Shown here in pieces: positions 7,573 through 44,039 of a stretch of 64,000 nt of DNA (the first letter of the stretch is position 1; every line of letters begins with the position of its first letter). Position numbers and translations under genes: made by a program. Under the pieces are notes generated by a model. The model did no database searches. It worked only from the letters and a program-made list of their open reading frames with translations, and was not told the DNA's origin. The DNA lies in the sequence record NC_061449.1; one strand, given 5' to 3'.

Positions 7573-7907
7573 TGTACAACGTGTCAACGTGTCCAATTGA
7601 CGGTACTGAGAAGGTGGTTGTGTATCGCCACCCTATCTTTACCGATTACGGTTTAGGCTTAAAGATTAATCGCGACGGCGAGATGACAGTTGTAGAATGC
7701 AACATCGTCACTGGCGTAATTGACGGTCAGTCTAAGCTGGAAACCATCACAGATCACAGCGCACCACTTGATGTTCAATTGTGGTGTTTTACGTGTATGG
7801 TGACTCTGCGTGAATCTGTAAATAGACAGAGCCTATCATTAGATGCCTCATTCCCGAATAACGGAGGCATCGTTTATTATAACCAAAATCAGGAGAGTAC
7901 ATCGTGA
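7572..7907 (+). CDS. hypothetical protein
   Basis: ORF overlapping both neighbours (coupled). Confidence 0.55.
   Translation: MYNVSTCPIDGTEKVVVYRHPIFTDYGLGLKINRDGEMTVVECNIVTGVIDGQSKLETITDHSAPLDVQLWCFTCMVTLRESVNRQSLSLDASFPNNGGIVYYNQNQESTS
7816..7824 (+). promoter_or_regulatory. CTGTAAATA motif (putative phage promoter element)
   Basis: Exact copy about 80 nt upstream of ORF 7904. Confidence 0.5.
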
Positions 7908-8290
7908 GTGGATTATTCCCGCATCGCGTTATCGATCAAAAAGAAGGTTTCGTATTCATCGTTCAGCCTGCTGACGACAACGATCCTGATGCAGTAGAAG
8001 CAGCACAGGAAGTTGAAGCCATCCTGGTAGAAGCGTGGCCGACTGCTCCTTCTGAACTGACCGTTGAAAACGTGAAAGACCCAGAAGAAGCAGAACTGAT
8101 CTACGCTGACATTGCGCAACTGCTGGAAGAAGCAGAACGCGAAGAAGCGAAACAGATCGTAATCACCAGCGTCGTTATTGCTGGCAATCTGGCAATCGTC
8201 AACTGTATGCTCACTGGTGAGGATCTGGAAGACGAAGATGAAGACGAAGACGATGATTCCGTTGAAGCCGACGAAGAAGACTTCGATTAA
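7904..8290 (+). CDS. highly acidic hypothetical protein
   Basis: 128 aa, D/E-rich C-terminus, GGAG RBS. Confidence 0.7.
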   Translation: MSGLFPHRVIDQKEGFVFIVQPADDNDPDAVEAAQEVEAILVEAWPTAPSELTVENVKDPEEAELIYADIAQLLEEAEREEAKQIVITSVVIAGNLAIVNCMLTGEDLEDEDEDEDDDSVEADEEDFD

Positions 8291-8299
8291 CGTCTGTCG

Positions 8300-8319
8300 T
8301 GAGGACCTTCGGGTCCTCA
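8300..8319 (+). promoter_or_regulatory. perfect C(UUCG)G hairpin overlapping the RBS/start of the next ORF
   Basis: TGAGGACC-TTCG-GGTCCTCA; the stem contains GAGGA and the A of the ATG at 8319. Confidence 0.7.
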
Positions 8320-8453
8320 TGAATCTAGCCGACGCGAATGTCGCATACGCAGCAAAGTTCCTTACGAACAAGACAGACGATGAAGCCCGTGCTCTGCTTG
8401 CTGCGCTCAAGAACGAGGAAGTAGAATCACTGTATAACTTCTTGGTGGCGTAA
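8319..8453 (+). CDS. small hypothetical protein (44 aa)
   Basis: ATG at 8319 in frame with track ORF 8178..8453; its stop overlaps the next ATG. Confidence 0.55.
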   Translation: MNLADANVAYAAKFLTNKTDDEARALLAALKNEEVESLYNFLVA

Positions 8454-8950
8454 TGGAAACAAATTCAGTGGACGAAAGTCCTAATAACGCAAGGCATCGC
8501 ATCTTCTTTAAGCAGCCGAAACGAGTCCCTCCCTTCGATACAGCTTTCGTTCGTTCCTCAAACAAGGAAGGTCTGAAAGTTCTCCTATCGGCTGCTCCTG
8601 AACATTGTCAGATTATTTTGTTTACGGACGGTCCCGGCGCCGCTTACGCCTTGAAACGCCTCTTTAAGCGCAACTTCAAACTCTGTTCGCAAGCTCCACA
8701 ACTTGACCTTAGGACACTTACGTTCACCGGTCAGGTCGTTCTACAGTTCGTTCGCGGTGGTGCAGTCGTAGACCCACTCGCTCGTTACTTCTGCGCTGGT
8801 GATAGCTATCTGCATGAGCTTGCCCAGACGACGAAGATTGCCGAAGTCGATACAGACACGATTGATATGTTCTGTTGCGGCTTAGGGTTTCATCGTGCGT
8901 TACGTGAGCGTGGTCGAGGTCGTTCTCTCGTATTCGCGGAGGAACAATGA
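8453..8950 (+). CDS. hypothetical protein
   Basis: 165-aa coupled ORF. Confidence 0.6.
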   Translation: METNSVDESPNNARHRIFFKQPKRVPPFDTAFVRSSNKEGLKVLLSAAPEHCQIILFTDGPGAAYALKRLFKRNFKLCSQAPQLDLRTLTFTGQVVLQFVRGGAVVDPLARYFCAGDSYLHELAQTTKIAEVDTDTIDMFCCGLGFHRALRERGRGRSLVFAEEQ

Positions 8951-9978
8951 GTGGTAGATCGTTTGCCAGTATAGGGAAAACCCCTACACCCGGCTCAGTA
9001 CCAAAGATGAAGATCAAGTACGGCAAGAAGCCGATGCTTCACGTTGTTGATGCGTCGAACTGGATGTGTCGTGCTTACTTCGCTACGCAGAAAAGTCCTA
9101 CGTATGCAAAAGACGGTACGCCGACTTATGGCCTGCGCCAGTTCCTGTATATGGTTAAGGACCTGATTGATATTGCTGCGAAAGACCCGAACGGTGCGTA
9201 TCTCGCTTTTTGCTTCGACCCAAGCTCAAGCGATACGTGGCGTTATCGTGCAATTCAACAATGGGCTGCTGAACACAAGAAGAAATACATTCGTCAGGTG
9301 TTCAAGAAGTCGAGCGACTACAAGGGTAACCGCGACCGAACTCAGACAGTAGAGCTTGGTCCGCAGATGACTCTTGCGCGTGAGATCTTGCAAATGGCAG
9401 GCTACTACGTAGGGATTAAAAAGCCTTACGAGTGCGATGACCTTGTAGGTACATTGAGCGACCGCTTCAAGCATGACTATCTGATCAAGCTGTATTCGCG
9501 TGATAAAGACTATGTGCAGTTGGTCGATCACAAAAACGTTGAGCTTATCATGCAAGCGCAGTCGAACGCTCCTGAACGCCGCTTCGATTTCAAAACAGCA
9601 CAGGGTTTCTTTGGTGTTCCTGCTGATCGTGTTATTGATATGCTCGCACTCTGCGGAGACGGCGTCGATAACGTTCCAGGCATTCCTGGGCTTGGCGAGA
9701 AGACCTCGATTGAGCTTATCAATAAGTGGGGAGGCGCGTTAGGTATTCGTGACGCTCTGCTCAGTGGTAAGTTGAAATCAAATGCCGGTTGGGCGAAAGC
9801 ACTGACCATGCAAGTACCGGCTATGGATATTGAATTGCAAATGGAGCTTGTAACTATCGACCGTAACGTTCCGTGTTTGCCTCGCAACATCGAAGCGTTC
9901 GCTCCGAGCAGACCAGACATAAAAGCGCTGAAAGCTACTAAGAAGCGCCTGGCTCTGCCTCAACTATTACACGTCTAG
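8947..9978 (+). CDS. 5'-3' exonuclease / flap endonuclease (PolA N-terminal, T4 RNase H-like)
   Basis: VVDASNWMCRAYFA, YKGNR, YECDDLVGTL, SRDKDYVQL, LCGDGVDNVPGIPGLGEKT (helix-hairpin-helix). Confidence 0.92.
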   Translation: MSGRSFASIGKTPTPGSVPKMKIKYGKKPMLHVVDASNWMCRAYFATQKSPTYAKDGTPTYGLRQFLYMVKDLIDIAAKDPNGAYLAFCFDPSSSDTWRYRAIQQWAAEHKKKYIRQVFKKSSDYKGNRDRTQTVELGPQMTLAREILQMAGYYVGIKKPYECDDLVGTLSDRFKHDYLIKLYSRDKDYVQLVDHKNVELIMQAQSNAPERRFDFKTAQGFFGVPADRVIDMLALCGDGVDNVPGIPGLGEKTSIELINKWGGALGIRDALLSGKLKSNAGWAKALTMQVPAMDIELQMELVTIDRNVPCLPRNIEAFAPSRPDIKALKATKKRLALPQLLHV

Positions 9979-9989
9979 AAGAGGACAGC

Positions 9990-10532
9990 ATGACGGAAAA
10001 GATTACGCAGTTGGAGAAATGGTTTGATGCAGCGAAAGTCGCATTCAAGATGGGGACAGTCAACCCTGATGGTGATGCTGCGTTGCTGTTGGCAATCCAT
10101 AAACGTCTGGTGAAAGAAGCCGAAGATTCAGGTGACGAAGATACTGTGACCGCAGCTCGGGTAGATCTGGAGGAATTTCTTGCAGACCTGCGCAAAGAGC
10201 TTCGCATGTACGACCTGATCTGTCGTCGCTTCAACACTGACCTGTACCCGAACATCAAAGTCGGTGATGACGTCAAAATCTATATCGCACTCATGGCACA
10301 AACGCCGGGTAGTGCTGTAATGGCAATGACGTACCTGTATCTCGCTCGCTGCTACACGCTGCAAGACATGATTCTGAACTTTCTCCCGAACGGCTTCCCT
10401 GCTAACGATGCTCTTGGCCTTACGTGGAGCATTCAGAAAGGGAACAGTGATTCGTTTACCGGAAATCTGGTGGACGATATTGAAACTGTAAATAGCCTGT
10501 ACAATAAGATGTATAGCTCTGGAGATAAGTAA
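9990..10532 (+). CDS. hypothetical protein
   Basis: 180-aa ORF with GAGG RBS. Confidence 0.65.
   Translation: MTEKITQLEKWFDAAKVAFKMGTVNPDGDAALLLAIHKRLVKEAEDSGDEDTVTAARVDLEEFLADLRKELRMYDLICRRFNTDLYPNIKVGDDVKIYIALMAQTPGSAVMAMTYLYLARCYTLQDMILNFLPNGFPANDALGLTWSIQKGNSDSFTGNLVDDIETVNSLYNKMYSSGDK
10486..10494 (+). promoter_or_regulatory. CTGTAAATA motif
   Basis: Exact copy 37 nt upstream of ORF 10532. Confidence 0.55.
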
Positions 10533-11125
10533 TGGATTTGTCTGCTATCGGTTACGCCCCGAAGCAGTTTCGAGTAATTCCCGTCGAGAAGGGCAATCTC
10601 GTTACTGACTTCATTCAAGGTAAGTTTCGCGTTATCGGCGTTGAGTGCAACGCTCGCGGTGCTTACGGTAGTCCTATTCAAAAGAGTATTGCACGTCGCT
10701 TCCCGGAAGTTGTGCGCAAGGTCGAATCAATCGACTACGAACACGAACTGACAATCGGTAAGACGCACATGATCCGTGTCGGTACTCAATATCGCCGCAA
10801 TATGTTTGTTGCTAACATGCACATTGCTCGCGGTTTTGGTCTGGGTCTCAATGGATCTTCTGCTGGAGCCCACAAGCCCATCAATCGTTTCAGTGAGAAG
10901 TTCCTCACGCGGGCGTTTGAAGACTTGTTGGAGCAGTGCGATAAAGAGAATGTTGCACTTGACCGACAGATCGCTATTCAGCGTTTCTATGGCGGACTCG
11001 GCGGGGTTTCGTGGGAAGAAGTATGTGTGGTGCTCGACGCTATCTGCGAAAAGTATCAGTTCAACATGTACGCTTATCTCCCTCGTAACTACAACACTAA
11101 CTTTGTGCGGGGCGTTGCGCAATAA
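10532..11125 (+). CDS. macrodomain-like protein (Poa1p / phage type)
   Basis: KGNLVTDF…IGVECNARGAYGSPIQKSIARRFPE…YGGLGGVSWEEV, matching the macrodomain pattern GD/N-L…CN…G…IA…FP…GxGGxxW. Confidence 0.7.
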   Translation: MDLSAIGYAPKQFRVIPVEKGNLVTDFIQGKFRVIGVECNARGAYGSPIQKSIARRFPEVVRKVESIDYEHELTIGKTHMIRVGTQYRRNMFVANMHIARGFGLGLNGSSAGAHKPINRFSEKFLTRAFEDLLEQCDKENVALDRQIAIQRFYGGLGGVSWEEVCVVLDAICEKYQFNMYAYLPRNYNTNFVRGVAQ

Positions 11126-11140
11126 CTCTGGGGTGTATTG

Positions 11141-11482
11141 ATGAATACAATACGCGGATTTGATTGGCTCTTTTACGGAGATGGAACCGATAGTGGCCAA
11201 CACTCAATTTTAAGTATCGTCGTTGAACAAGCGACGAAATCAATACAGGTAGAAGTGAAGCCAGGATGCGCCGTACCTGTAATTCAAGCGATTCAGGAAA
11301 ACGAAGTCCTGTACGCTCAGGCAGATAACGGTCTGTATCGAGTTCGCTATAGCTGTTCGTTCCGCAATCTTGATGCTAACGTTTTCCCGAAAGACAAAAC
11401 AACCTTCCGTTTGAAACTCATTGCATGTGATTTTCTTGCGGGCGTAACAACGCACGATAAGATGTCGGAGTACGTGCCATGA
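11141..11482 (+). CDS. hypothetical protein
   Basis: ORF in tight array. Confidence 0.55.
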   Translation: MNTIRGFDWLFYGDGTDSGQHSILSIVVEQATKSIQVEVKPGCAVPVIQAIQENEVLYAQADNGLYRVRYSCSFRNLDANVFPKDKTTFRLKLIACDFLAGVTTHDKMSEYVP

Positions 11483-12240
11483 TTACTGTACAGAAAATTG
11501 AAGCCCGTTTAAAGAGACTGGACTATACTCGGCCCTCACCTAGTCGTGAGATGCTTGAGGGACTTATGAAAGATGGACGCACTCGCATTCTAAGCAAATC
11601 AGCTTCGAGTGACTTGTGCAAAGACTCGTTGGAATACTTCGAGTTCTGTCTTTCTCAGGTCGGCTCTTTCTGTACTGCTTCGTATAATGCTGTAGAGATT
11701 GGTCTTTCTCTCAACATTCAACCGATCTACATAGCTGCTGCAATTAATCTTTACGGCAGCGACTGGCAGTTCCGTTTCCTTGAGCTTAAACGCTTTGGTC
11801 AGTTAGCTAGGGGTGACTACTCTGTGTGGAAATCGGCTGGGACATGGTTCGGTTTGGGTGAGTGTCGTCGTCGTTTGGTACGCGCTGGTACAACATCTGA
11901 GATCTCAACCGGCCAGTCTATCCTGCGTATGGCAGTACGCAAAGGTGAGATGGACAAGATACGTCAGATTGCAGAAACGCATCCACATCGCATGATGTCC
12001 ATTTTGGATAGAAAATGCGAGCCTTTGTATACTGACCCACGTATCGTTGCGTCAAAGAAAGCGCGTGAGAAAGCAAAAGCTGATGCCGCCGCTGCTGGCA
12101 AAAAGTTGGCGGAACCTCGCGCGTACAATGATCTAGCTGCTGTGTTCAACGGTCCTATTACACCGCCAGATAAGACGCGTGGCTTTAGTGATTCCTCGGA
12201 AACACGAGGCACTGTTAGCGGTCGTCGTTTTCGTGTTTAA
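11479..12240 (+). CDS. hypothetical protein
   Basis: 253-aa coupled ORF. Confidence 0.65.
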   Translation: MITVQKIEARLKRLDYTRPSPSREMLEGLMKDGRTRILSKSASSDLCKDSLEYFEFCLSQVGSFCTASYNAVEIGLSLNIQPIYIAAAINLYGSDWQFRFLELKRFGQLARGDYSVWKSAGTWFGLGECRRRLVRAGTTSEISTGQSILRMAVRKGEMDKIRQIAETHPHRMMSILDRKCEPLYTDPRIVASKKAREKAKADAAAAGKKLAEPRAYNDLAAVFNGPITPPDKTRGFSDSSETRGTVSGRRFRV

Positions 12241-12250
12241 GGAAAAAATA

Positions 12251-12634
12251 ATGGATAAGAAGTTAATCAGTACCCTCGTAAACAGTCTAAGTTCAGAGCC
12301 GCGTGGTCTTGCTGGAAAGTATGCAGACAAATCTGTTGGTCAGATCGCCAAAGAAGAAATTGGCATCTCGTTTATCGTAAATAACGCATTTGCCATGGAG
12401 CATCTTCTCTGGATGCCTGACCTTGAAGACAAATGGTTTGTACCTACAGAATCTCTCAACGATCTGTCTGCTGGTCTTATCGGTCATGTGGGTGCCGTGC
12501 CTGTCTATAGTGACTGGTATTATGGCCGCCCTGAGGACCGTATGCGTCCTTGCGATAAAATCCCGCGCGTCGGTGTTGTTCAAAATAACACGAACGAAAT
12601 TTTCCTGCTTACTGTCGAGCAATTTCGTCAGTAA
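12251..12634 (+). CDS. hypothetical protein
   Basis: ATG after AAGGA RBS, in frame with track ORF 12179..12634. Confidence 0.6.
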   Translation: MDKKLISTLVNSLSSEPRGLAGKYADKSVGQIAKEEIGISFIVNNAFAMEHLLWMPDLEDKWFVPTESLNDLSAGLIGHVGAVPVYSDWYYGRPEDRMRPCDKIPRVGVVQNNTNEIFLLTVEQFRQ

Positions 12635-12685
12635 AGGCTGCGAACGGTAATTTCGAGCGTCAAAACAAATAACGGAAATCTAATC

Positions 12686-13456: not shown

Positions 13457-13463
13457 GGGAAGT

Positions 13464-14729
13464 ATGATGAAAGTAAACGGGCGTATCTTAGCAATCGTGC
13501 CACACAAGACCCTCCAGGACAGGACTAAGTCTGGTGTTGGTGCGTACATTGATGGACTTGAAGCGTACGGCTTCTGCGACTTCATCACTGACGGTGAAAA
13601 CAGCTCTGTCACCAAGAGCCTGTGGTTTAACTACGGTGATACCACTCTAAGCGACGGTTACAAAGTTGGTCACATCCAGAGTGCTCTGCTTGAAGCGCTC
13701 GACCGCATTCCGTATCGTGCAATTATTTGTAGCACCTACGAAGCTGTCGAAGCTGCTGTCGGTCTTGGTCTGCCTAAGATTATGCCCGTTTACTATCGTT
13801 CACACAACAGCTTCCTGTTAACGCAGGACCTGAATGGGCTTGGTGCTGAGAAGATGCACCGTGCGTTGCTGCAAGCGCCTGTGACTGGTCTGCGCATCTT
13901 AGCGAACTGTGATTCAACTGCGCGTGTGCTGTCTGAGATTTATAAAACTGAGGCTGCTGTCGCGTATAACGCATTCAGTGTATCTGACTACAATCCACCT
14001 GCGAAACGTAAACCTTCGCTGTTGATTATCTGTCGCTACGAAAAGGTTAAGCGTCCTGCGTTTGCTGCGCGTATCGCTGCTGCGTCTGGCTTACCTGTTC
14101 GTGTTATGACCGGCTCTGATCGTCAGGTCAAAAGCTGGGAGAAAGAGCTTGCTGATGCAGGCGTAAAAGATTACCAAGTCGTCAGTGGTTTGTCTGGTGA
14201 CGAGAAGATGGCGTTCATCGGACAATGTACCGTAGCGCTGTCATGTGCCGAAGTAGAGTCATTCGCTAACGGTGTGCGTGAGACTATCCCGTACTGCCCG
14301 ACGTTCGTTGTGCAAACTTCTAAGTACGATTGGGCGCGAGACTATACGCGCTTCTGCTCTGAGAACAAGCACATCCACATTCGCACTGTTGATCGTGTGA
14401 CTGCGAAAGAGGTGGAAGAACTGGGCAATGAGATTGCTTACTGGGCCCGCACCAAGTATCTGACTAAAGCTGAACGCGTTACGCTGCTGACCGAATGGTG
14501 CAAGCGCGTGGACAAAGGCTGGGCCGACTTCATGAAGAATGCAGTCGTGCCTGATGACGGCAAGCCGATGAAGACCGACCTGTCGAAAGAACTCGAAGAA
14601 AAAGGCGTAGTAGATTGGTCGAAGACGCAGACGTTAATGCGTACTGTAAAAGCTATACACAAGTGTCATGCTCGTATGGGCTTGACGTTCGATGGCACCA
14701 AAATCAAAACGAAAGGGAGGAAGAAATGA
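13464..14729 (+). CDS. GT-B fold glycosyltransferase (GT4-like)
   Basis: N-terminal SGVGAY, LLIICRYEKVKRP (R…K donor-binding pattern), ESFANGVRE (E-x7-E motif). Confidence 0.75.
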   Translation: MMKVNGRILAIVPHKTLQDRTKSGVGAYIDGLEAYGFCDFITDGENSSVTKSLWFNYGDTTLSDGYKVGHIQSALLEALDRIPYRAIICSTYEAVEAAVGLGLPKIMPVYYRSHNSFLLTQDLNGLGAEKMHRALLQAPVTGLRILANCDSTARVLSEIYKTEAAVAYNAFSVSDYNPPAKRKPSLLIICRYEKVKRPAFAARIAAASGLPVRVMTGSDRQVKSWEKELADAGVKDYQVVSGLSGDEKMAFIGQCTVALSCAEVESFANGVRETIPYCPTFVVQTSKYDWARDYTRFCSENKHIHIRTVDRVTAKEVEELGNEIAYWARTKYLTKAERVTLLTEWCKRVDKGWADFMKNAVVPDDGKPMKTDLSKELEEKGVVDWSKTQTLMRTVKAIHKCHARMGLTFDGTKIKTKGRKK

Positions 14730-20957: not shown

Positions 20958-20966
20958 CTGTAAATA
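20958..20966 (+). promoter_or_regulatory. CTGTAAATA motif
   Basis: Intergenic, 18 nt upstream of the dam ATG. Confidence 0.65.
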
Positions 20967-21827: not shown

Positions 21828-21905
21828 GGCTGCTGTGTCTCCACTAAGAAGTAATCTGTAAAACAATAACGTACCAACCATTTGACTACATATTAAGGAT
21901 ATAAA

Positions 21906-25826: not shown

Positions 25827-25977
25827 CAATCCATTAGCAGATTACTTCAACGCAGACGCAGTTATCCCAGGCGTAGACGACGCAGAAGATCGTGTCGAAG
25901 CTATGCGCGACGGAGGCGGCGAAGTCGTTGACGATAAAGATGCTGATGGTTGCGAAAGCGGCGCCTGTAAAATCTAA
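25813..25977 (+). CDS. 54-aa protein mimicking the C-terminal redox tail of ribonucleotide reductase alpha (NrdA)
   Basis: Translated by hand: MSQPNNPLADYFNADAVIPGVDDAEDRVEAMRDGGGEVVDDKDADGCESGACKI*; E. coli NrdA ends …TRDG…QDDGCESGACKI; below the ORF-track size cut-off. Confidence 0.75.
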   Translation: MSQPNNPLADYFNADAVIPGVDDAEDRVEAMRDGGGEVVDDKDADGCESGACKI

Positions 25978-26546: not shown

Positions 26547-27188
26547 GTGATGTTTTACGATATTCTGAAAGCGATACCTGCGATCATCCTGTGCTATATT
26601 CTTTGGCGTTATGTCATGAACAAGGTCGAACGTGACCGTCACCTGATTAAAGCACAGGAGCACTATAACTGCGGGCGTCTGGATCGTGGCAACGTCTGGG
26701 TACATTTGAAGACAGGCCGACCGTATACTGTGCTGTGTCTAACCAATACAGGTACTTCAAAGGCCGGGTGGGAAATCAATGTCATCTACACGAATGACTT
26801 CCAACAGATCTTCAACAGGCCATTCAGCGAGTTTTGCCACAAGTTCACACACGTTAGTCGTGGTGAAAATAAGGAACAATTCAATACCACTCTTGCGTGG
26901 ATGCAGATGGAGGCTAACACGCGAATCACTCTGCCGAAAGAGGGTGAGATTTGGGTTGAGAGTTCTCGACGCAACGAGCCTCCACAGAAACTGGCAGCAC
27001 AAGGACATGTCGCAAAAGTCTTTCCACTGCGTGTCCGCATTGATCTTGTGTTGGGTATTGGTCAAGCCCATCCTATCGTTGTGTATACTGTAAATGAAGA
27101 ACACCAAACAGCGATGTTACTTTCGCAGTTTATCTTCGTTTATCACAAAGAGGTCGAAGCCAATGACACAGCAAGCGCTAGTGTTTAA
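26547..27188 (+). CDS. hypothetical protein with DUF1653-like domain(s) and N-terminal TM
   Basis: GNVWVHLKTGRPYTV…VIY…NRPFSEF; second similar unit GEIWVE…IVVY…LLSQF. Confidence 0.6.
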   Translation: MMFYDILKAIPAIILCYILWRYVMNKVERDRHLIKAQEHYNCGRLDRGNVWVHLKTGRPYTVLCLTNTGTSKAGWEINVIYTNDFQQIFNRPFSEFCHKFTHVSRGENKEQFNTTLAWMQMEANTRITLPKEGEIWVESSRRNEPPQKLAAQGHVAKVFPLRVRIDLVLGIGQAHPIVVYTVNEEHQTAMLLSQFIFVYHKEVEANDTASASV

Positions 27189-31221: not shown

Positions 31222-31263
31222 TCTGTAAAGACAGAGAAAGAGCAACCGAAAAGAGATACGACA

Positions 31264-35809: not shown

Positions 35810-36811
35810 ATGTTCATGCAATTCGCAATAGCAAATACATTAGGGATTCCAGCAGACGTTCTAGCTTCGGCGAAAGCACGGCTGCTGTTATTCGACGCGT
35901 CTGTAGACCCAAAGCTCGCCGTAAAAGATTGGACACGATATGCCGTTCAATGTAGAGGAGTAATAGCAAGTCTTGTTGGCAGTGTGTATACCACAGGACA
36001 GATTCAAGGTGTGCGTGACAGAAAACATTATCCTGCAACTGGTGGTGCTCTTTCGTCTTCTGCGCAAACAACACCTCTGGCCGCTACTAACTACACAACT
36101 CTGGCAGATCTCGATACGAGTAATTCCAGTCTCGGTATCAAGTACGGAAATCGAATAAGACTACCATCCAGCACAGTCGCACCTCCCACATGGGATAGTG
36201 ATGGTTACGGACTCCCACAAGATCTGATGATCATTTCTTCCAAAGCAGGTGAGTTGAAGGCTGAGGTGAGTGCAAGCGTCAGTTGTTATTTCACCAGAAC
36301 GTTCAAGCCCGATCCGAATCGCACCATAACTCGAACGAACACTATAAATAGCTATTCTGTTCTTCGTGGTATCAAGTTAAATAAGACTGCGGTCAACTTG
36401 AATTTTCGTATAGCTCCCGCAGTGTTGTCACAGTCTAAAGTCGCAGATCTGCCTGCAGGGATCTTTCTTGCCAATAGAGCAATTCAGGGAGTCTACTACG
36501 AAACTGAGTATTACAAAACAAGCTATGCACCTGTAGATAAATTTCAGAATGGTGACGCTGGATATATTCCTCTAGGGACCGTTAGTAAGATTCCAGTTTA
36601 TCTGGACTCAACAGAAGAGGATGAAACCGTGGTGCCGACTTGGGCGGCGCTGCAAGTTGACTCAATTGGAGGCGAATCCATTCTGAGATTCACTGTAGGA
36701 GAAGATGGAGATTTTATTCCTACGTCATCTTGTGTTCCTGGCAAGTACATGAAGCTGGTGGAAAATCCAAATAGGATGCTGCGCATCCGTCAACATCTAC
36801 AGAACCTGTGA
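35810..36811 (+). CDS. virion-fibre-family paralog (related to the 47-58 kb array), isolated cassette
   Basis: KARLLLFDASVDP resembles RQRMFLFADNVEPP / RRRMFLFSDDVEPP of ORFs 57658 and 56595; T/S-rich; bounded by terminators. Confidence 0.55.
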   Translation: MFMQFAIANTLGIPADVLASAKARLLLFDASVDPKLAVKDWTRYAVQCRGVIASLVGSVYTTGQIQGVRDRKHYPATGGALSSSAQTTPLAATNYTTLADLDTSNSSLGIKYGNRIRLPSSTVAPPTWDSDGYGLPQDLMIISSKAGELKAEVSASVSCYFTRTFKPDPNRTITRTNTINSYSVLRGIKLNKTAVNLNFRIAPAVLSQSKVADLPAGIFLANRAIQGVYYETEYYKTSYAPVDKFQNGDAGYIPLGTVSKIPVYLDSTEEDETVVPTWAALQVDSIGGESILRFTVGEDGDFIPTSSCVPGKYMKLVENPNRMLRIRQHLQNL

Positions 36812-36818
36812 AAAATAA

Positions 36819-36843
36819 GGGTGGCTTCGGCCGCCCATTTTTG
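36819..36843 (+). terminator. intrinsic terminator (UUCG loop)
   Basis: GGGTGGC-TTCG-GCCGCCC then ATTTTT. Confidence 0.8.
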
Positions 36844-36853
36844 TATCTGAATA

Positions 36854-36862
36854 CTGTAAATA
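36854..36862 (+). promoter_or_regulatory. CTGTAAATA motif
   Basis: Intergenic, immediately after a terminator, 16 nt before ATG 36879. Confidence 0.7.
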
Positions 36863-36878
36863 TCTGACAGGAGGAAAC

Positions 36879-37220
36879 ATGAAAGATGATCTGCATGGTA
36901 TTCGAGACTTCATCAAAGGTCGCCTAGATGAAGAAACGAAGGACATTGCTATGAGTGATGACATGGTGCTTAGCCGCACTCGTGACATTGCTGGTGGCGT
37001 TGTCCGAGCTATCACTCGCACGGTGCGTAATGACGGTTTCAGCATTACCTGTGACAGCACCAACAACACGCAGGAGATGATTGATAACAATGTTCTGGCT
37101 GTTAACATCGTTGTCAACGATCCGCATTTAATAAATCAATTACTCAGAGGGAACGACAATGCTAAAACGTCTATTAGCCTTGTTCTGCCGCAAGAAGAAG
37201 CCAGTCCAAAAGACTTTTGA
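36879..37220 (+). CDS. hypothetical protein
   Basis: AGGAGG RBS. Confidence 0.6.
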   Translation: MKDDLHGIRDFIKGRLDEETKDIAMSDDMVLSRTRDIAGGVVRAITRTVRNDGFSITCDSTNNTQEMIDNNVLAVNIVVNDPHLINQLLRGNDNAKTSISLVLPQEEASPKDF

Positions 37221-37611
37221 AGAAAAGCTGCACAAACTCGGTGGCTATCAACCTGCCGAGAAGACCAGCGACTATGATCTGACTGCGCGAGTTGATCGTC
37301 ACGGCCGAACGCATTTCGCCAAAGACGAAAAGCCAGTCAAGACTACGCCTATGCCTCCGCGTAAAAACTTCAACGGTCAGACTCGTCGCGGTATGACAGT
37401 CAATCAGGCTTCTTCTAATCGTGCTCAGACAGACGATTTGATGCTCGCTATGATGATGCAGCAAACCTATGTTGCGCCGTCACCCATTCGTTCACACGAC
37501 GATAACTGCCGTGTAGATCACACGCCAAGCTATCGCCATAGTGATCCTGATCCAAGCCCGTCATACGATGGCGGTTCTGATTCTGGCTACAGTGGAGGCG
37601 GTTGTGATTAA
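37159..37611 (+). CDS. hypothetical protein with S/G/D-rich tail
   Basis: GAGGG RBS; ends SYDGGSDSGYSGGGCD. Confidence 0.6.
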   Translation: MLKRLLALFCRKKKPVQKTFEEKLHKLGGYQPAEKTSDYDLTARVDRHGRTHFAKDEKPVKTTPMPPRKNFNGQTRRGMTVNQASSNRAQTDDLMLAMMMQQTYVAPSPIRSHDDNCRVDHTPSYRHSDPDPSPSYDGGSDSGYSGGGCD

Positions 37612-37945
37612 ACGTCTAATGAACTGGATAGGCTTGATGCTTATCTCAGAAAAGAACAAGCGCAAGCTGCGTCAGCACGAAGCAATGATGCGCGCCTGCA
37701 CCGACGTGTATGACTGGTGCGGTGCAGACCTACCGCAGACGGCAGAAGCGGTTGAGTACGTTCGTACACGCGCTCTCGGTTATGAGAACCGATTGAACAT
37801 TCATAACGGTAAAATCATGACGCCGTATGAGTGTCACACAGGTATCAGCGATTGGCGTGATGCTATGCGCCGTAAGTATCTGCATAGCGAAGTGGACTTT
37901 GACGGGCATACGTTCACTGCACCAAAGAACGAATCTGTAAACTAA
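37604..37945 (+). CDS. hypothetical protein
   Basis: GTG after GGAGG. Confidence 0.55.
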   Translation: MIKRLMNWIGLMLISEKNKRKLRQHEAMMRACTDVYDWCGADLPQTAEAVEYVRTRALGYENRLNIHNGKIMTPYECHTGISDWRDAMRRKYLHSEVDFDGHTFTAPKNESVN

Positions 37946-37976
37946 GAACACAATCAACATATACCGAGAATAAACT

Positions 37977-38441
37977 ATGGAACGTAACACTGACGAAAAG
38001 ATTGTGGTACTGGACGCTGATGTGTATCGCACTCTTGTACAATACGCAGAATGCGGTGAACGCGACTGCGGGACTAACTTCTTTGGGAAATCCGTGAAAG
38101 AACTCGAAAAACACGCGCGACATTTCAATTCGCACTTACGTCCTCCGTTTGAGCGTATGCTTGAAAACGAACGTCTGGGTAAAGCAGAGCGTCGTCGCCT
38201 CGTAAAGAAAGCTCGTCGCCTGAGTTCGCAGCGCGAGCCTGTACGTTTCCTTGTTGACCACCAGCACAAGGTCATCTACCCTATCATCATTACCGGCGTG
38301 TCGTCTGATAATCAACTGCGTTTGAAGTATCACGCACTGTCAGATGGATGGGACTCATGCGCTATGGTCGACCGCATCTTCGAAACACCAGAAGAGTTGC
38401 CTCAGTCGTATCGTATGCTCAAGGAAGGGGAAATGGTCTGA
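37977..38441 (+). CDS. hypothetical protein
   Basis: 154-aa ORF. Confidence 0.6.
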   Translation: MERNTDEKIVVLDADVYRTLVQYAECGERDCGTNFFGKSVKELEKHARHFNSHLRPPFERMLENERLGKAERRRLVKKARRLSSQREPVRFLVDHQHKVIYPIIITGVSSDNQLRLKYHALSDGWDSCAMVDRIFETPEELPQSYRMLKEGEMV

Positions 38442-38842
38442 TGAAAGCACTGTCTATTCGCCAACCGTGGGCATGGCTGATTACTCAAGGCCACAAGAAG
38501 ATTGAGAACCGTACGTGGGATACAAAGAAGCGCGGACGTTTTCTCATTCACGCCAGCTCGAAGCGTCCTAGTGACGATGACATGCAGGCTGCTAAAGAGA
38601 TCTGCGATAAGCTGCACATCAAGCTACCGGAGAAGCACGAGTTTGTGCTTGGTGCTATCGTTGGTTACGCTACGTTGTGTGGCACGACAACGAAGTCTGA
38701 CGATCCATTCTTCTTCGGCCCTGTCGGTCTACAACTGAAAGACTGCCGTGCCGTTGAGCCTATCCGCTTCAAGGGCGCTCTCAGTTTCTTCAACACACCG
38801 TACTGTGTCGTAGGCGGTAATGTGATCTTGTCTCCACGATGA
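38441..38842 (+). CDS. ASCH domain protein
   Basis: MKALSIRQPWAWLITQGHKKIENRTW…RGRFLIHAS…GAIVG…KGALSFF. Confidence 0.9.
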   Translation: MKALSIRQPWAWLITQGHKKIENRTWDTKKRGRFLIHASSKRPSDDDMQAAKEICDKLHIKLPEKHEFVLGAIVGYATLCGTTTKSDDPFFFGPVGLQLKDCRAVEPIRFKGALSFFNTPYCVVGGNVILSPR

Positions 38843-39054
38843 GGCCCATACTGGTTGTTCATAGAGGCAAATTGCTGCTTGCTCAACTGGTAAACGAAGA
38901 TCGCAATGACGTGTACTTTGTTCGGCATATAAAAGTGCGGAACGTGAACATGTACGTTACAGGACTCGCACCAGTTGCTACTGTTGTGTTTCTCTATGGC
39001 TACTCGCCTACTGCTGATGACTATGAGGTTGTCAGGCAGATGCGGGGTATGTAA
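38839..39054 (+). CDS. small hypothetical protein
   Basis: ATGA overlap, ends just before a terminator. Confidence 0.5.
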   Translation: MRPILVVHRGKLLLAQLVNEDRNDVYFVRHIKVRNVNMYVTGLAPVATVVFLYGYSPTADDYEVVRQMRGM

Positions 39055-39057
39055 AAC

Positions 39058-39083
39058 AAGGGGTGGCCTCGTGCTACCCTTTT
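39058..39083 (+). terminator. intrinsic terminator
   Basis: AAGGGGTGGC-CTCGT-GCTACCCTT then TT. Confidence 0.65.
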
Positions 39084-39100
39084 CGCGTTTAAGGAGCACC

Positions 39101-39517
39101 ATGTTACCGTTTGCACCTAAGACCCGTGTAGTTAGTATGCGTAATGGCAATAAGGATTACGACGTGCGTATCGACCGTGAGACTAAGTGGGGAAATAAAT
39201 TTTATATGACCCATGAGTCTGTGGCCGAGCGTGATAGGGTATGCGACGAACACGAAATAGATTTGTGGTTAAAGATCTATGACGGTGAGATACGCATAAG
39301 TCATTTGCTTGAACTCTACGGCAAGCGACTGGGCTGCTGGTGTAGCCCGAAGCGCTGTCACGGTGACGCATTAGCAAGAGCAGCAGAATGGGCGTACAAT
39401 GCAAACTGTAAATGGGAGCGTATAAAAGCCACTTACAGGAAACGCCGTCGTGCAGCAGCCAAAGCCAATCGTCAAAAAGACAGGAAGAAAGTTTCTCGCC
39501 GCAAGTCCATCTCTTAA
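39101..39517 (+). CDS. DUF4326 family protein
   Basis: VRIDRETKWGNKF…LYGKRLGCWCSPKRCHGDAL. Confidence 0.85.
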   Translation: MLPFAPKTRVVSMRNGNKDYDVRIDRETKWGNKFYMTHESVAERDRVCDEHEIDLWLKIYDGEIRISHLLELYGKRLGCWCSPKRCHGDALARAAEWAYNANCKWERIKATYRKRRRAAAKANRQKDRKKVSRRKSIS

Positions 39518-40016
39518 AGCAGTCAATTGGGAAGTGTATGTGAGTCCGTTTAGCGGTACTGCTTACGGGCAGTTCGCTGTAGCGTGGGGAGATTCCTACG
39601 TTGTGATTCACACGCTCGACGCAACTGATGCGCTCCGTGATACCTGTGATCAACTCTATCTGGACAAGTTAGACAAGATCATTATCAGCCTTAGCACATT
39701 CATGGATCTATTGGGTACCACAAATATCGGCCATAGTCGTGAGTGGTTGAACCCTATTGAAACTGGAGCCACAGGGAGCGTGGCATTCTGCTATTCAGTC
39801 ACTCCTACAGAAGCCACCATATATTTCGAACTCGCATCTTGTACGGAGAAGATCCGCTTCTACCCTGCACCTACAGGTCGCAGCAGGCTACGCAACCTCA
39901 AGACCTATCTTGGTCGTCTGCACAAAGAGCTGGTGGTACATAGACAGGCCATGTCTGAAACTATGAGCGTAGTTAACGAAACAAGGGCTATGTTGAAATC
40001 TGTAAATAAAGCATAG
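39450..40016 (+). CDS. hypothetical protein (start uncertain)
   Basis: Long ORF filling the gap. Confidence 0.55.
   Translation: MQQPKPIVKKTGRKFLAASPSLKAVNWEVYVSPFSGTAYGQFAVAWGDSYVVIHTLDATDALRDTCDQLYLDKLDKIIISLSTFMDLLGTTNIGHSREWLNPIETGATGSVAFCYSVTPTEATIYFELASCTEKIRFYPAPTGRSRLRNLKTYLGRLHKELVVHRQAMSETMSVVNETRAMLKSVNKA
40000..40008 (+). promoter_or_regulatory. CTGTAAATA motif
   Basis: 37 nt upstream of ATG 40046. Confidence 0.55.
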
Positions 40017-40045
40017 AATCACTATACCTAGAATAAGGACCTATT

Positions 40046-40372
40046 ATGGCAATGACAGAATTGCAGTTTGCTCTTTCCATGTTTGCTCAGAAATGTACTG
40101 AGGCAGCATTGCTGGCCACAGAGGCGCAGCAGTTTGGTATGGAACACAAAGACGGTGGCGGCAAGACAGTCGAGGAACGTCTGTACAGCAACATGCGTGA
40201 TATTGATGCGGCTCGCTATCTGCTCGAAGAAAAGACGCGCGGGTTTGAGTACGTTCCTGATCTTATTCGTTCTTTGGACCGTACCGACGAATTGAGAGCG
40301 CTCATGGAACAGGCCAAAGATAGCGGCCATGTTATGCGTGAAGACGAAGACGACGAAGACGAGGATGAATAA
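40046..40372 (+). CDS. hypothetical protein, acidic tail
   Basis: AAGGA RBS. Confidence 0.6.
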   Translation: MAMTELQFALSMFAQKCTEAALLATEAQQFGMEHKDGGGKTVEERLYSNMRDIDAARYLLEEKTRGFEYVPDLIRSLDRTDELRALMEQAKDSGHVMREDEDDEDEDE

Positions 40373-40887
40373 TGAGCTATTCATTTGTTGTTGAGTGGAA
40401 CATCCGCTTAAAGCCTGATACGCCGAAAGAAGTTATCAGCATGTTGAAAGCGTGGCACAAGCACCCACACCGCTTCGACGAGTTTTTGCATCTCGGCGTT
40501 GACGTTAGTGCTGCGCTGGGGTGCCGTGATAGTGAAGGCTTCGCAGGTGTTGTGCCTGAGCGCAACTTCATTCACGGTAGTGGTGTGGTATCTTATATTC
40601 GCACCTGCGCTAACTTCTCTCGTCGCTCTCAGGGGACAGACCGTCTGTTAGGATTCATCAACTGGCTTGAGCCCTACATCGACCATCGCGACGACGTGAT
40701 TGGTATCATGCGCGGCGAAGACGACCTGTATGATATTCACGATGATCGCGTGAACATGTGGTCTGACGAACCTCATGTTCCTACTAAAACTTATTACGAA
40801 ATTCGCGTCGTTAACAACCATGCTCAAATCAAATACGCGCGTGGTGATCTCTACAACCTCTATCCGTGGGTACAACATGCTTACTAA
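40372..40887 (+). CDS. hypothetical protein
   Basis: Coupled ORF. Confidence 0.6.
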   Translation: MSYSFVVEWNIRLKPDTPKEVISMLKAWHKHPHRFDEFLHLGVDVSAALGCRDSEGFAGVVPERNFIHGSGVVSYIRTCANFSRRSQGTDRLLGFINWLEPYIDHRDDVIGIMRGEDDLYDIHDDRVNMWSDEPHVPTKTYYEIRVVNNHAQIKYARGDLYNLYPWVQHAY

Positions 40888-41551
40888 TATCGCTCGCCTC
40901 GTCGCTACACAAGCACACACAGGTCAGGTACGCAAGTACACTAACGAACCCTACATCAATCATCCGCTGCGTGTTGCACAGTGGTTGTCGCAGTTTCACG
41001 TAGGTGAACTGATTGAAGCCGCTGCTATCTGCCACGATGTTATCGAAGACACAGGCGTTGGCCACAGTGCTCTCGAAATGACTGTCGGCACACAGGTTGC
41101 TGATCTGGTTCTCGAAGTAACCAACAACGAATACCCTGAAGGTACGCCTCGTATCGAGAAGTTTTGGGGCAACATCATTAAGTTGCTGAACGCCAGTCAT
41201 CAGGCGCAGACGCTCAAGTGCGGTGACTGCTATGACAACTGCAAAGACGTGTACGAGCTGGACCCGTCGTATGCTGCGCGTTACATCGCAGAGAAGTTCT
41301 TCATGATTCGTTTGTTCACTCGCGCTCAGGGTGACGTGCGTTCGGCCGTGCTGCAACTGCTGTCTGATATCTTCAACAAAATGTCCGACGGGCATCGCAT
41401 CTACTGTCTGGAGTATATGCAGCGTCTGGAACGTGAATGCCCAGACAGCCTGTTGATCCATTTCCACAATGCGCTGGCCGAAGCACAGAACTACAACGGC
41501 TACACGCTGCGTATCGGAGATTCATATGGAACTGAAACTGCCTCCGTTTAA
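40877..41551 (+). CDS. HD-domain hydrolase, RelA/SpoT-hydrolase (small alarmone hydrolase, Mesh1-like)
   Basis: AHTGQVRKYTNEPYINHP, AICHDVIEDT, VLEVT, KCGDCYDN. Confidence 0.85.
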   Translation: MLTNIARLVATQAHTGQVRKYTNEPYINHPLRVAQWLSQFHVGELIEAAAICHDVIEDTGVGHSALEMTVGTQVADLVLEVTNNEYPEGTPRIEKFWGNIIKLLNASHQAQTLKCGDCYDNCKDVYELDPSYAARYIAEKFFMIRLFTRAQGDVRSAVLQLLSDIFNKMSDGHRIYCLEYMQRLERECPDSLLIHFHNALAEAQNYNGYTLRIGDSYGTETASV

Positions 41552-41888
41552 AACGCGTGACACCCGCGTCGAGCACATGGCCATTCAAGACAAACAAGCC
41601 ACTGCTATTATGCGAGTCAATGAGACTCGCTGGTGGGGCTTCAAGAAGCGTGAGTTGTGTATTGTTATCAACTGCCGTAAGATAACACGCAAAGAACCTG
41701 AATGGGCATCGTATGTTAAATGGGAAGACGGTTACATGGTCGCTCCTGTTTGCAGCGATAGCGATGTGCTTGAGGTGGCGAACCGTACGCTGCGGGATAT
41801 GCGCAATCTGCACTTCAAAGACTTTGGCCAGTTGCTGGCCTATCGGTTGTCTATTCACATAAGGAAGAATCATGGCAGAACAGTTTGA
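41526..41888 (+). CDS. hypothetical protein
   Basis: ATG after GGAG. Confidence 0.55.
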   Translation: MELKLPPFKTRDTRVEHMAIQDKQATAIMRVNETRWWGFKKRELCIVINCRKITRKEPEWASYVKWEDGYMVAPVCSDSDVLEVANRTLRDMRNLHFKDFGQLLAYRLSIHIRKNHGRTV

Positions 41889-42519
41889 GTTGACGGCCAA
41901 AGATGTTGAAGCGTATTGGCGAGGTCGTGCGTACATTGAAGCTGCTCGTTTGGCTCATGATGCGCACGATGACAAGACTGCTAATACCATGACGTATCAG
42001 GCGATTGAGCCTTATCTCGAACAAGGCCGTGCTGCTATTGCTGACGAACAAGCGGCGCATACAGGTGATGATTTGCCTGACGCAGTGTTTGAAGAAGGGC
42101 AGACGCTTGAAGCACGTTTCGTTGTGCTGCTCGCTCTGATGCTGGACAGTGATCGACACGAAGTTGGCGGGAAAACGATTCTTTCTATGGCGCATCTGTC
42201 TGCGGCCGCGCGTGATAAGAAGATCGTGCTGGTGCTTAATGGCCACAACACTGCGCTTGCTCGAAGCCTTGCGCTTGAGTCAGGTTACGAAGTGCGTGAT
42301 TCTGGTTTGATTGAAGCTGCTCGCGCTATGAACGATAAGCTAATCAGACGCACCGAGATGACGGGTTTCTTCGAACTCGATACACCTCGTGTACGCAAAG
42401 AGCCTGACCCTAATCTGAAAGCCGTTCGTCAGAAGCATAATCGTGTAGGCAGACATTCAGGCCACCAGCGTTTCAGCGCGAAGCCTGCTCGTCAGAACTT
42501 CAAAGGCCGAGGCCGATGA
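41872..42519 (+). CDS. hypothetical protein with basic C-tail
   Basis: AAGGA RBS, 215 aa. Confidence 0.6.
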   Translation: MAEQFELTAKDVEAYWRGRAYIEAARLAHDAHDDKTANTMTYQAIEPYLEQGRAAIADEQAAHTGDDLPDAVFEEGQTLEARFVVLLALMLDSDRHEVGGKTILSMAHLSAAARDKKIVLVLNGHNTALARSLALESGYEVRDSGLIEAARAMNDKLIRRTEMTGFFELDTPRVRKEPDPNLKAVRQKHNRVGRHSGHQRFSAKPARQNFKGRGR

Positions 42520-42896
42520 TTCACGAAATGTATGCGATTGAATACGCGAACAATATTCCTACTCGTATTCACGTATTTAAGGCGGAAGCAGACTCGCAGC
42601 AATCTGATTACCGTGCGCTAGTCAGCATGGGCGCTTTCGATAGGCGTATGGGTTTGATTTGTGCTCGCGATCTTACGGCCAAACGCTTCTGGCTGAAACG
42701 CAAGTTTGAGTGGGAACAACTGGTGGAGAGCGACCGACGTATGATGCGTCTACGTCATTCTCCTATTTGGATTAATCTTCCAAAGCAGATACACGAAGAC
42801 CTATGGTCGTTCTATCGTGCAGTCGGCTGGGATTACAAGCAGAAGAAATTCGTTGACCAAAAATCCACTATCTCTGCCACAGCAGCATCCGCTTGA
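42516..42896 (+). CDS. hypothetical protein
   Basis: ATGA overlap. Confidence 0.55.
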   Translation: MIHEMYAIEYANNIPTRIHVFKAEADSQQSDYRALVSMGAFDRRMGLICARDLTAKRFWLKRKFEWEQLVESDRRMMRLRHSPIWINLPKQIHEDLWSFYRAVGWDYKQKKFVDQKSTISATAASA

Positions 42897-43009
42897 TGTG
42901 GTATCGACGCGCACGGGAGTCTTTCTCGATGTGCTTAATAATGAAAAGACGCCAGCAGGTGAATGTATCAGTAGTGTTGTAGATGCTGTCCTTGCTCAGG
43001 GGAGTGACA

Positions 43010-43363
43010 ATGTTGAAAGATTGGTTGATAACAACGGAGACAGTCGTACACACGCTGACTGTTGATCTCAAAGAGGGTACAGCAGTTGGTGTTGTCGAAA
43101 CTATCTACTACGGTCCTAAACGCTTAGGCAAGCGCCTCATCCACAGCACAAGCATAGCCTGCATGTGTCACGATATTTATCGTCGTCATTTGACGTGGAC
43201 AGAAGCAAATAGCATGTCTGACTTGCTTCCTAAGTACAACACAGCGAAGTCATTGAGTCGTAGACTGCGCACTGAACTTAACAAACTCGTTGCAGAAGGT
43301 AAAGTACATGGCGAGTCCATTAGCGGAAATCAACATCGGCAGCCCGTTGCCGGACAGCAGTGA
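43010..43363 (+). CDS. hypothetical protein
   Basis: ATG after GGGAG. Confidence 0.5.
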   Translation: MLKDWLITTETVVHTLTVDLKEGTAVGVVETIYYGPKRLGKRLIHSTSIACMCHDIYRRHLTWTEANSMSDLLPKYNTAKSLSRRLRTELNKLVAEGKVHGESISGNQHRQPVAGQQ

Positions 43364-44036
43364 CCTGATCTTCAAACAGATTCTTGATGGTAGCATTGAG
43401 ATTCTGGACAGCACACTCGACTTGCACAAGCAAAGCAATGTGCTGCTACGTAACACCAAAGAGTTGGGTATTGATATACTCAACGGTACTTGGACCTATA
43501 CGCCTAAGTATACGTATGAGAACAGACATCCTCTGGCATATACGTTCGGTCACATGATGGCTGATCCAAATAGCACGTATCAGGAACTGGCCAAAGAGCT
43601 TACGTCCAAAGCGGAGCAAGACTTGTTCTATGGTCCGTTGCGTAAGCTCCGTGCGTTCTTGATTAACCATGACACAGCTACAGGTAAAACTAATCTGCGT
43701 CTGCCTGATGCGTGGGAAGTTCGCATTGACGACAATCTGAATATGCGTGACTTCATGGGTATCGTCGAAGGCTATGTCGCCACGCAGATGCGTCAGGAAA
43801 TCTCTGCGCTTGTGTATGAGCGATACTATGCGTCAGGTGATACTGCTAAAGACGCCAAAGCCCGTCTACTGGTCAGCAACGGTAAAGTGAACATGGTAGA
43901 CCCTGAGCGCAACTACACCGTCTGCGCTGCTACCTTGTTTGATATGACGCCTGTGTTCAAGTTCATCTCTCGTCCGTGGGATCACGGTCTGACGCAAGAG
44001 CATTTGCGCGCCTATCGCAAGTTAGTAAATCTGTAA
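43308..44036 (+). CDS. hypothetical protein
   Basis: Long ORF. Confidence 0.6.
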   Translation: MASPLAEINIGSPLPDSSDLIFKQILDGSIEILDSTLDLHKQSNVLLRNTKELGIDILNGTWTYTPKYTYENRHPLAYTFGHMMADPNSTYQELAKELTSKAEQDLFYGPLRKLRAFLINHDTATGKTNLRLPDAWEVRIDDNLNMRDFMGIVEGYVATQMRQEISALVYERYYASGDTAKDAKARLLVSNGKVNMVDPERNYTVCAATLFDMTPVFKFISRPWDHGLTQEHLRAYRKLVNL

Positions 44037-44039
44037 ATA
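44031..44039 (+). promoter_or_regulatory. CTGTAAATA motif
   Basis: 54 nt upstream of ATG 44094. Confidence 0.6.

Follow-up and report, generated by a model that had tools for sequence, protein, structure and literature searches.

Background

The late promoters of phage T4, TATAAATA, are read by gp55 together with gp33 and the gp45 clamp, and at the middle promoters of the same phage, MotA and AsiA redirect the host sigma70 holoenzyme. In Bacillus phage SPO1, transcription runs as a cascade, with the host sigmaA acting first, then gp28, and then gp33/34; alternative sigma factors in general often regulate their own genes. Here, we describe a recurrent word of 9 nucleotides (nt), CTGTAAATA (hereafter, the box), that precedes genes in bases 1-64000 of the Erwinia jumbo phage pEa_SNUABM_17 (NC_061449.1 / MZ443777.1; pEa17 for short). 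This whole stretch of 64,000 nt is referred to below as the window. An earlier note, made from the sequence of the window alone, had proposed the box as a phage-specific promoter that resembles the T4 late promoter and would be read by a phage sigma factor or RNA polymerase (RNAP).

The genome of Pseudomonas phage Lu11 was reportedly announced by Adriaenssens and colleagues in 2012. The GenBank record of this phage (NC_017972 / JQ768459) labels a sequence beginning with aaaaCTGTAAATA as a “putative middle/late promoter”, and three promoter features of Lu11, aaaaCTGTAAATAcatagta, aaaaCTGTAAATAcagtgta and aaaaCTGTAAATGgtgagta, share the core (A)AA-CTGTAAAT(A), which recurs in pEa17. Our search of the literature found no paper on the box in Alexandravirus, Y3, AD1 or Lu11. 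The group of jumbo phages that joins Lu11 and PaBG with Dickeya and Erwinia phages (“Lupandier”) has been defined previously (PMC7412058). These phages are regarded as candidates for the biocontrol of fire blight and soft rot; for about 70% of their genes, the function is not known. Jumbo phages of this kind fall into group 2, whose members have sigma factors but no RNAP (Iyer et al. 2021, PMC7824862).

The genome of pEa17, a member of the genus Alexandravirus that infects Erwinia amylovora, comprises 263,916 bp, with a coding fraction of 95.4%. The genes run on the plus strand from 1 to 45.8 kb, on the minus strand from 45.8 to 187 kb, and mostly on the plus strand beyond; ARAGORN detected no tRNA genes in the whole 264-kb genome. 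We used a gene set of 330 RefSeq coordinates, all validated as open reading frames. For comparison, the whole genomes of Lu11, PaBG and Dickeya phage JA29 were used, with genes called and de novo upstream-word enrichment run, and contigs from four public runs were compared over window positions 36000-41900 (5,901 letters).

A directional box upstream of start codons

The six exact copies of CTGTAAATA that the earlier note had listed are all present on the plus strand, at distances from the next annotated start codon that span the 16-79 nt it had given, along with the four near matches and the intrinsic terminator, a hairpin with a T-run, in front of the copy at 36854 (Table 1). In 100 dinucleotide shuffles of the window, the box occurred 0.46 times on average and 3 times at most. 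The enrichment extends to the complete genome, which contains 28 exact copies, compared to about 2 expected. These are divided equally between the strands (14 each), and every one of the 28 lies on the local coding strand; 15 are wholly or partly intergenic, and 21 are located 6-101 nt before a start codon on the same strand, within an upstream zone of 120 nt that covers only 7.6% of all positions (binomial P ~2e-18). The initial C appears to be an integral part of the signal, being found immediately before 28 of the 29 genome copies of TGTAAATA. The last two positions are softer, with CTGTAAACA (7 of 7), CTGTAAAGA (6 of 6), CTGTAAATG (5 of 5) and CTGTAAATC (3 of 3) invariably on the sense strand.

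The 7-mer CTGTAAA shows the same bias, with 66 sense copies and a single antisense copy genome-wide, and is the top intergenic word recovered by de novo enrichment in pEa17. There are 42 copies within 120 nt upstream of starts (39-42 for limits of 100-120 nt), and the spacing between the box and the start codon has a median of 38 nt, with a range of 6-102. Seven CTGTAAA copies in addition to those considered in the earlier note were found in the window, all in the sense orientation, two of them upstream of starts (14644, gp019; 25965, gp039).

The consensus can be written as A-W-W-CTGTAAATA, and nothing else is common to the 28 exact sites between -30 and +40. Among the upstream sites of four genomes, no position from -55 to -5 rises above the background information content, that is, there is no -35-type block, and the host sigma70-type -35/-10 or TGnTATAAT elements are absent at the CTGTAAATA sites. 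Given that the 16- and 18-nt spacings to the ATG leave room for nothing more, the box would have to be a -10-type element. A purine, mostly A, occupies the seventh position past the 9-mer at 32 of 39 pEa17 sites; the corresponding figures are 25 of 30 for JA29, 27 of 29 for Lu11 and 9 of 10 for PaBG. If TAAATA, which has T-12 and A-11 but A at -7, is the hexamer at about -12 to -7, this conserved purine, 7 nt downstream of the hexamer, would be the transcription start (the predicted +1 of Table 1), with the CTG and the A/T triplet extending the box upstream.

Such strict sense orientation upstream of start codons would also be expected of a signal in mRNA, such that the CTGTAAATA word could be an RNA-level processing site or the binding site of a translational regulator, with no promoter involved. 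When all genes were subjected to 300 synonymous-codon shuffles, sense CTGTAAA inside coding sequences was found to occur 37 times, compared to 17±4 in the shuffles, and the antisense word once, compared to 9.8±2.8. This avoidance of antisense copies favors a promoter at the DNA level because a promoter in that position would fire against the genes, whereas an approximately ten-fold depletion within genes makes no sense for a signal on the untranscribed strand. Furthermore, eight box sites directly follow intrinsic terminators, and one box, at 192686, is located in a 64-nt divergent gap and heads a minus-strand unit, gp227-226, within a plus-strand region. Upstream transcripts are not expected after terminators or in the divergent gap, so these sites also favor a promoter and speak against an RNA-level signal, as does the variable distance between the box and the start codon (16 to 101 nt). 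We consider an RNA-level role of the word without promoter activity to be extremely improbable.

The box is conserved in related phages. In the phages SNUABM_1 and SNUABM_33 and in Dickeya phage AD1, 26-28 exact copies were found at syntenic places, compared to 1-2 copies of the reversed word, and at the four window sites aligned with four relatives, the box is retained exactly. In more distant genomes, CTGTAAAT is present in 48 copies in Lu11, 40 in Yoloswag and 39 in JA29 (6-8 in controls), and in 3 copies in PaBG. CTGTAAA is the top de novo upstream word not only in pEa17 but also in JA29 (72 sense and 10 antisense copies, 30 upstream of genes) and Lu11 (51 sense, 11 antisense, 29 upstream), and the box precedes the SSB gene in pEa17, Yoloswag, JA29 and Lu11. 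In PaBG, the box is weaker, taking the form AAACTGTAAA. A candidate lineage-specific box, CTGTCAAT, located before the PaBG SSB gene, was dropped, with 3 copies and no enrichment. Membership of these phages in one clade is supported by the homologues of the pEa17 sigma factor gp241, which are 37% identical in Lu11 and 35% in PaBG, and by the retained synteny of the module that encodes sigma, SSB and the UvsX recombinase. The proposal of a phage-specific promoter thus gains strong support from the orientation and position of the box, from its avoidance on the antisense strand, and from its conservation and de novo detection in distant relatives; the CTGTAAATA box very probably is such a promoter.

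Three candidate promoter classes and their genes

The box and its variants precede genes of the replication machinery, including DNA polymerase gp171, sliding clamp gp169, clamp loader gp209, SSB gp242, NAD-ligase gp146, SbcD-like gp184, topoisomerase II gp325 and methyltransferase gp030; the last of these is the DNA methyltransferase behind the window copy at 20958, which the earlier note had correctly recognized. Further targets are the ParB-like gp048, the MazG-like gp062, a phosphatase and the sigma gene gp241.

A second box, (C)GCTAATTT (class B), emerged from de novo enrichment. Of the 19 CTAATTT copies in the genome, 16 are located within 120 nt before starts, 14 of these at 22-46 nt. 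Behind this box are the genes for the tail sheath (gp133), the PAAR spike (gp111) and the endolysin (gp197), as well as the gene that precedes the portal gene and those for several large virion-block proteins that have no known function. Apart from the two candidate late promoters in the window (Table 1), there are 14 further genome sites, for example, 76627, 83416, 101988, 169954 and 187142. In JA29, Lu11 and PaBG, too, a word of the TAATTT type is found repeatedly before genes, and elsewhere the hexamer is avoided, with 53 copies in pEa17, where 145 would be expected, and 25 in PaBG, where 60 would be expected. The exact 8-mer GCTAATTT is not enriched outside Alexandravirus, the shorter TAATTT core being common instead.

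The third class, which came to light when all intergenic gaps were inspected, consists of host-type extended -10 elements, TATGnTATAAT, located before small genes in the 208-262 kb region and each accompanied by an upstream TGGACAAAAT box. The sites, all on the plus strand, are 210959, 220766, 227757, 239499, 242364, 255338 and 259397, ahead of small genes and the topoisomerase operon. The position of the TGGACAAAAT box, about 28 nt upstream, is too distant for a normal -35. The TATGnTATAAT promoters are candidates for an early class. The CTGTAAATA box, judging by the genes that follow it, behaves as a middle (replication) rather than a late promoter because the downstream genes form the replication set whereas the virion and lysis genes lie behind GCTAATTT.

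Two sigma-like proteins and the candidate reader of the box

As for the proposed phage sigma factor or RNAP, the suggestion is half right. No RNAP is annotated in the genome, and a search with PF00940 found none, although the controls of this search were silent as well. Genome searches with Pfam Sigma70_r2, Sigma70_r4 and T7-type RNAP were empty and uninformative, the first two missing gp241 and the RNAP controls remaining silent. Two sigma-like proteins are encoded, the sigma70-like gp241 and gp329, which resembles sigma factors of the extracytoplasmic function (ECF) type; both families are large in metagenomes and conserved in Lu11, PaBG and JA29.

The gene for gp241 lies outside the window, at 199604-200641. 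Annotated as a sigma factor, the protein matches phrog_17569 and, weakly, Pfam Sigma70_r2. A family profile built from 52 sequences matches regions 1.2-2.4 of RpoD (E=1e-4), with the W-W pair of region 2.3 kept. The AlphaFold model of gp241 (predicted local distance difference test, pLDDT, 82.5) yielded as top Foldseek hits exclusively E. coli sigma70, with a probability of 1.00, and superimposes on sigma70 residues ~110-446 with Z up to 15.5 over 223 residues. Alignments of the short C-terminal part reach no farther than about sigma70 residues 583-585, which is compatible with, but no proof of, gp241 lacking the -35-reading helix.

The second protein, gp329 (262381-263520, plus strand), is annotated as hypothetical and is encoded just before the first gene of the window, across the start of the record. 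It is a homologue of PaBG gp112 (E=2e-28), for which a sigma-like nature had been suspected (PMC7412058). The gp329 family comprises about 300 representative metagenomic clusters. The gp329 model (pLDDT 92.6) contains a sigma2-like domain at residues 145-250 (Z 7.3-9.4; root mean square deviation, rmsd, 2.4-3.0), for which the best twelve structural neighbors are nearly all sigma2 domains of ECF, group 3 or group 4 sigma factors, as well as a sigma4-like domain at 288-379 (Z 6.5, rmsd 2.1); the top Foldseek hits are ECF sigma H. By these model comparisons, gp329 is likely an unannotated second sigma factor. Its gene is part of the operon gp326-330, which lies behind early-type promoters.

Because no RNAP was found in the phage, the host core enzyme combined with a phage sigma-like subunit is the natural candidate for the reader, and we consider it likely that the box is a middle-class promoter recognized in this way. 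Our choice of gp329 as the subunit involved is tentative, and we would put it just short of an even chance. Under this assignment, the host sigma70 would read the extended -10 early promoters, whereupon the early operon would make gp329; gp329 would then read the CTGTAAATA middle promoters and switch on the replisome genes together with gp241; and gp241, in turn, would read the TAATTT late promoters before the virion and lysis genes. We propose this as the simplest and most likely cascade because gp329 is in an early-type operon, gp241 is behind CTGTAAATA, and TAATTT keeps T-12, A-11 and T-7.

The two factors could also be assigned the other way around, with gp241 reading the box from which it is itself expressed, in a positive autoregulatory loop, and gp329 reading TAATTT or doing something else. 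The gp241 start codon is 32 nt behind a box in pEa17 (41 nt from the first base of the 7-mer), and a box is found in the same place in JA29 and Yoloswag, an arrangement that fits the frequent autoregulation of alternative sigma factors; moreover, the combination of a firm sigma2 domain with a short C-terminal part suits a promoter that has no -35, and the box and gp241 homologues co-occur from the Erwinia phages to Lu11. However, a sigma factor made solely from its own promoter needs another trigger, and Lu11 and PaBG have no box within 1.5 kb upstream of their gp241 homologues. Furthermore, an RpoD-like sigma2 would best read TAATTT, which has T-12, A-11 and T-7, rather than CTGTAAATA, which has no T-7, and regions 2.3-2.4 of gp241 are almost invariant across the family, yet PaBG has few boxes. 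Overall, gp241 appears to be a less likely reader of the box than gp329, if one to be kept in view. A scheme that dispenses with phage sigma factors altogether, in which the host sigma70 holoenzyme is re-aimed to the box by a phage activator or appropriator, could account for the T-12, A-11 and A-9 that TAAATA shares with TATAAT and for the TG just upstream, and Iyer et al. (2021, PMC7824862) reported AsiA-like proteins from some jumbo phages of group 2. Nevertheless, the 55 nt upstream of the box contain no second conserved block that could serve an activator, T-7 is absent from the box, the clear sigma70-type extended -10 promoters of this genome have a different form, and two conserved sigma-like proteins would be left with one phage-specific box; we regard this scheme as improbable.

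Several observations weigh against reading of the box as a middle promoter by gp329. The protein gp329 has a sigma4-like domain, yet neither CTGTAAATA nor class B is accompanied by a -35 block with which this domain could pair, and gp241, which may be unable to read a -35 element, would be no less suited to a single box. T-7, normally needed by a sigma70-type sigma2, is absent from the box, and the register of the hexamer could be wrong. The Z scores of gp329 are middling for a helical protein; what really speaks for the model-based assignment is how consistent the hits are. Comparison of its sequence profiles with the PDB and with the gp241 family yielded nothing significant. PaBG has both sigma-like proteins, yet only 21 copies of CTGTAAA, 10 of them upstream of starts, and in pEa17 itself, about 7 of the 28 exact boxes are deep in genes or distant from any start. 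The timing is deduced from gene functions only; the 20 public runs that contain parts of the window, 2 of them wastewater metatranscriptomes, consist of assembled contigs, which cannot show 5' ends, and the contigs of the four runs compared over 36000-41900 revealed neither starts nor ends.

Individual sites

Table 1. Predicted promoter boxes and an associated terminator in the window
Feature	Position	Strand	Context and predicted start
Class B box agCTAATTTa	5376..5382	+	32 nt before gp005, which itself precedes the portal gene; candidate late promoter
Exact box CTGTAAATA (aatCTGTAAATA)	7816..7824	+	in the gp007 3' end, 79 nt before gp008; predicted +1 G7831
Exact box	10486..10494	+	in the gp012 3' end, 37 nt before gp013 (phosphatase-like); predicted +1 A10501
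Variant box CTGTAAAAG	14644..14652	+	73 nt before gp019
Exact box	20958..20966	+	238-nt intergenic gap, 18 nt before gp030; predicted +1 A20973 at the Shine-Dalgarno sequence
Variant box aatCTGTAAAAC	21856..21864	+	intergenic, 41 nt before gp031
Variant CTGTAAAAT	25965..25973	+	45 nt before gp039; internal TAA is the gp038 stop; terminator hairpin downstream
Variant box ataCTGTAAATG	27088..27096	+	within gp040, 66 nt before gp041
Variant box aatCTGTAAAGA	31223..31231	+	32 nt before ParB-like gp048
Intrinsic terminator (GGGTGGCTTCGGCCGCCC + T-run)	36819..36843	+	directly upstream of the 36854 box
Exact box	36854..36862	+	16 nt before gp054; predicted +1 A36869, where the Shine-Dalgarno sequence AGGAGG begins
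Variant box aatCTGTAAACT	37935..37943	+	33 nt before gp057
Exact box	40000..40008	+	in the gp061 3' end, 37 nt before gp062 (MazG-like NTP pyrophosphohydrolase); predicted +1 A40015
Exact box	44031..44039	+	54 nt before gp070; internal TAA is the gp069 stop; predicted +1 G44046
Class B box cgCTAATTTc	63481..63487	-	36 nt before gp096; candidate late promoter

The sites in the window differ in strength and in conservation. With GTA as its upstream triplet, the variant at 14644 is a weaker candidate, and the function of the variant at 25965 is doubtful given the gp038 stop inside it, the terminator hairpin after it, and the upstream triplet CGC. At the places syntenic to the variant at 31223, SNUABM_33 (~30.1 kb) and AD1 (~29.2 kb) carry an exact CTGTAAATA. 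The variant at 37935 is kept in AD1 and SNUABM_20 and is absent where the upstream gene differs, and the boxes at 40000 and 44031 are identical in four relatives. The terminator and the box at 36854 form a module that is kept while the flanking genes on both sides are exchanged between phages, and wastewater contigs break on both sides of it. This module of about 55 nt (window 36812-36870) is a mosaic junction and may serve as a boundary at which gene cassettes recombine. One wastewater DNA contig lacks exactly 327 nt (window 40041-40369) and with them gp062, which directly follows the box at 40000; this is a natural cassette-deletion variant.

Three sites outside the window deserve mention. 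The exact box at 84736 (minus strand) follows a run of A and is itself followed by about 1 kb (83656-84744, minus strand) without a credible gene, in which tRNA and Rfam searches detected no tRNA and no Rfam family. The exact box at 163902-163910 (minus strand) is only 6 nt before the annotated ATG of gp187, so that the predicted +1 is the A of the ATG, and either the mRNA would be leaderless or the start codon is misannotated. Finally, gp316, a gene of 3 kb, contains two exact boxes deep in its interior, at 248070 and 248250 (plus strand), which are separated by 180 nt and have the next start about 2.6 kb away. The two are kept in SNUABM_1, SNUABM_33 and AD1, and could be internal promoters or could be retained for some other reason.

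Implications and comparison with known systems

A reliable promoter map sorts the genes into early, middle (replication) and late sets and corrects operon boundaries. The conservation of the box and of the two sigma-like proteins as far as Lu11 makes the re-aiming of the host polymerase in jumbo phages that lack an RNAP directly testable, and the two-sigma cascade is a more interesting question than the box itself. It is possible, although we do not hold it to be the expected outcome, that the entire clade of RNAP-less jumbo phages, from those of Erwinia, Dickeya and Yersinia to Lu11 and PaBG, follows a three-step programme in which the ECF-like gp329 family, made early, reads CTGTAAATA with no -35 element despite its sigma4-like domain and turns on the replisome together with the truncated sigma70-like gp241 family, which then reads the TAATTT late promoters. 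If so, the gp329 family would be new among sigma factors and unusual in its promoter grammar, and the clade would provide a second natural sigma cascade besides the SPO1 type.

The likeness to T4 late promoters suggested in the earlier note holds for the architecture and fails for the regulon and the deduced timing and, it appears, for the type of factor. Both systems employ a single A/T-rich -10-type box without a -35, which differs in one base among the last eight, and a start predicted about 6-7 nt downstream, and the combination of the host core RNAP with a phage specificity subunit proposed here is also of the T4 kind. In pEa17, however, there is an obligatory C and an A/T triplet upstream, TATAAATA itself has only 3 genome copies, and the regulon of the box consists of replication genes, in contrast to the virion genes of T4. 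The sigma70-like and ECF-like proteins of pEa17 both appear to be unlike the gp55-type minimal sigma, with a Z of 6.5 only for T4 gp55 (7d7d_F) against gp329; pEa17 does have a sliding clamp gene, gp169.

The parallel with SPO1 would lie in the three promoter classes and in a sigma factor of one phase directing the next, given the early gp329 and the box before gp241. Unlike SPO1, the pEa17 cascade is deduced from gene position, the promoters have single boxes, and the proteins are unrelated in sequence. Like extended -10 (TGn-TATAAT) sigma70 promoters, the box has no -35 partner and carries a TG just upstream of an A/T hexamer, but in pEa17, one position fewer separates the TG from the hexamer, and A replaces T-7.

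The comparison with Lu11 reveals the same box, in the sense orientation upstream of genes, with the SSB gene beside the sigma gene as a target. The Lu11 box extends downstream (CTGTAAATA-n3-aGTA), and the Lu11 sigma gene is not directly behind a box. The Lu11 record presents a prediction without a regulon, a factor or a separation of classes, whereas in pEa17, three classes can be delineated and the box is tied to the replication genes. The pEa17 box is thus a well-supported new example of the type of promoter predicted in Lu11 rather than a new kind of signal.

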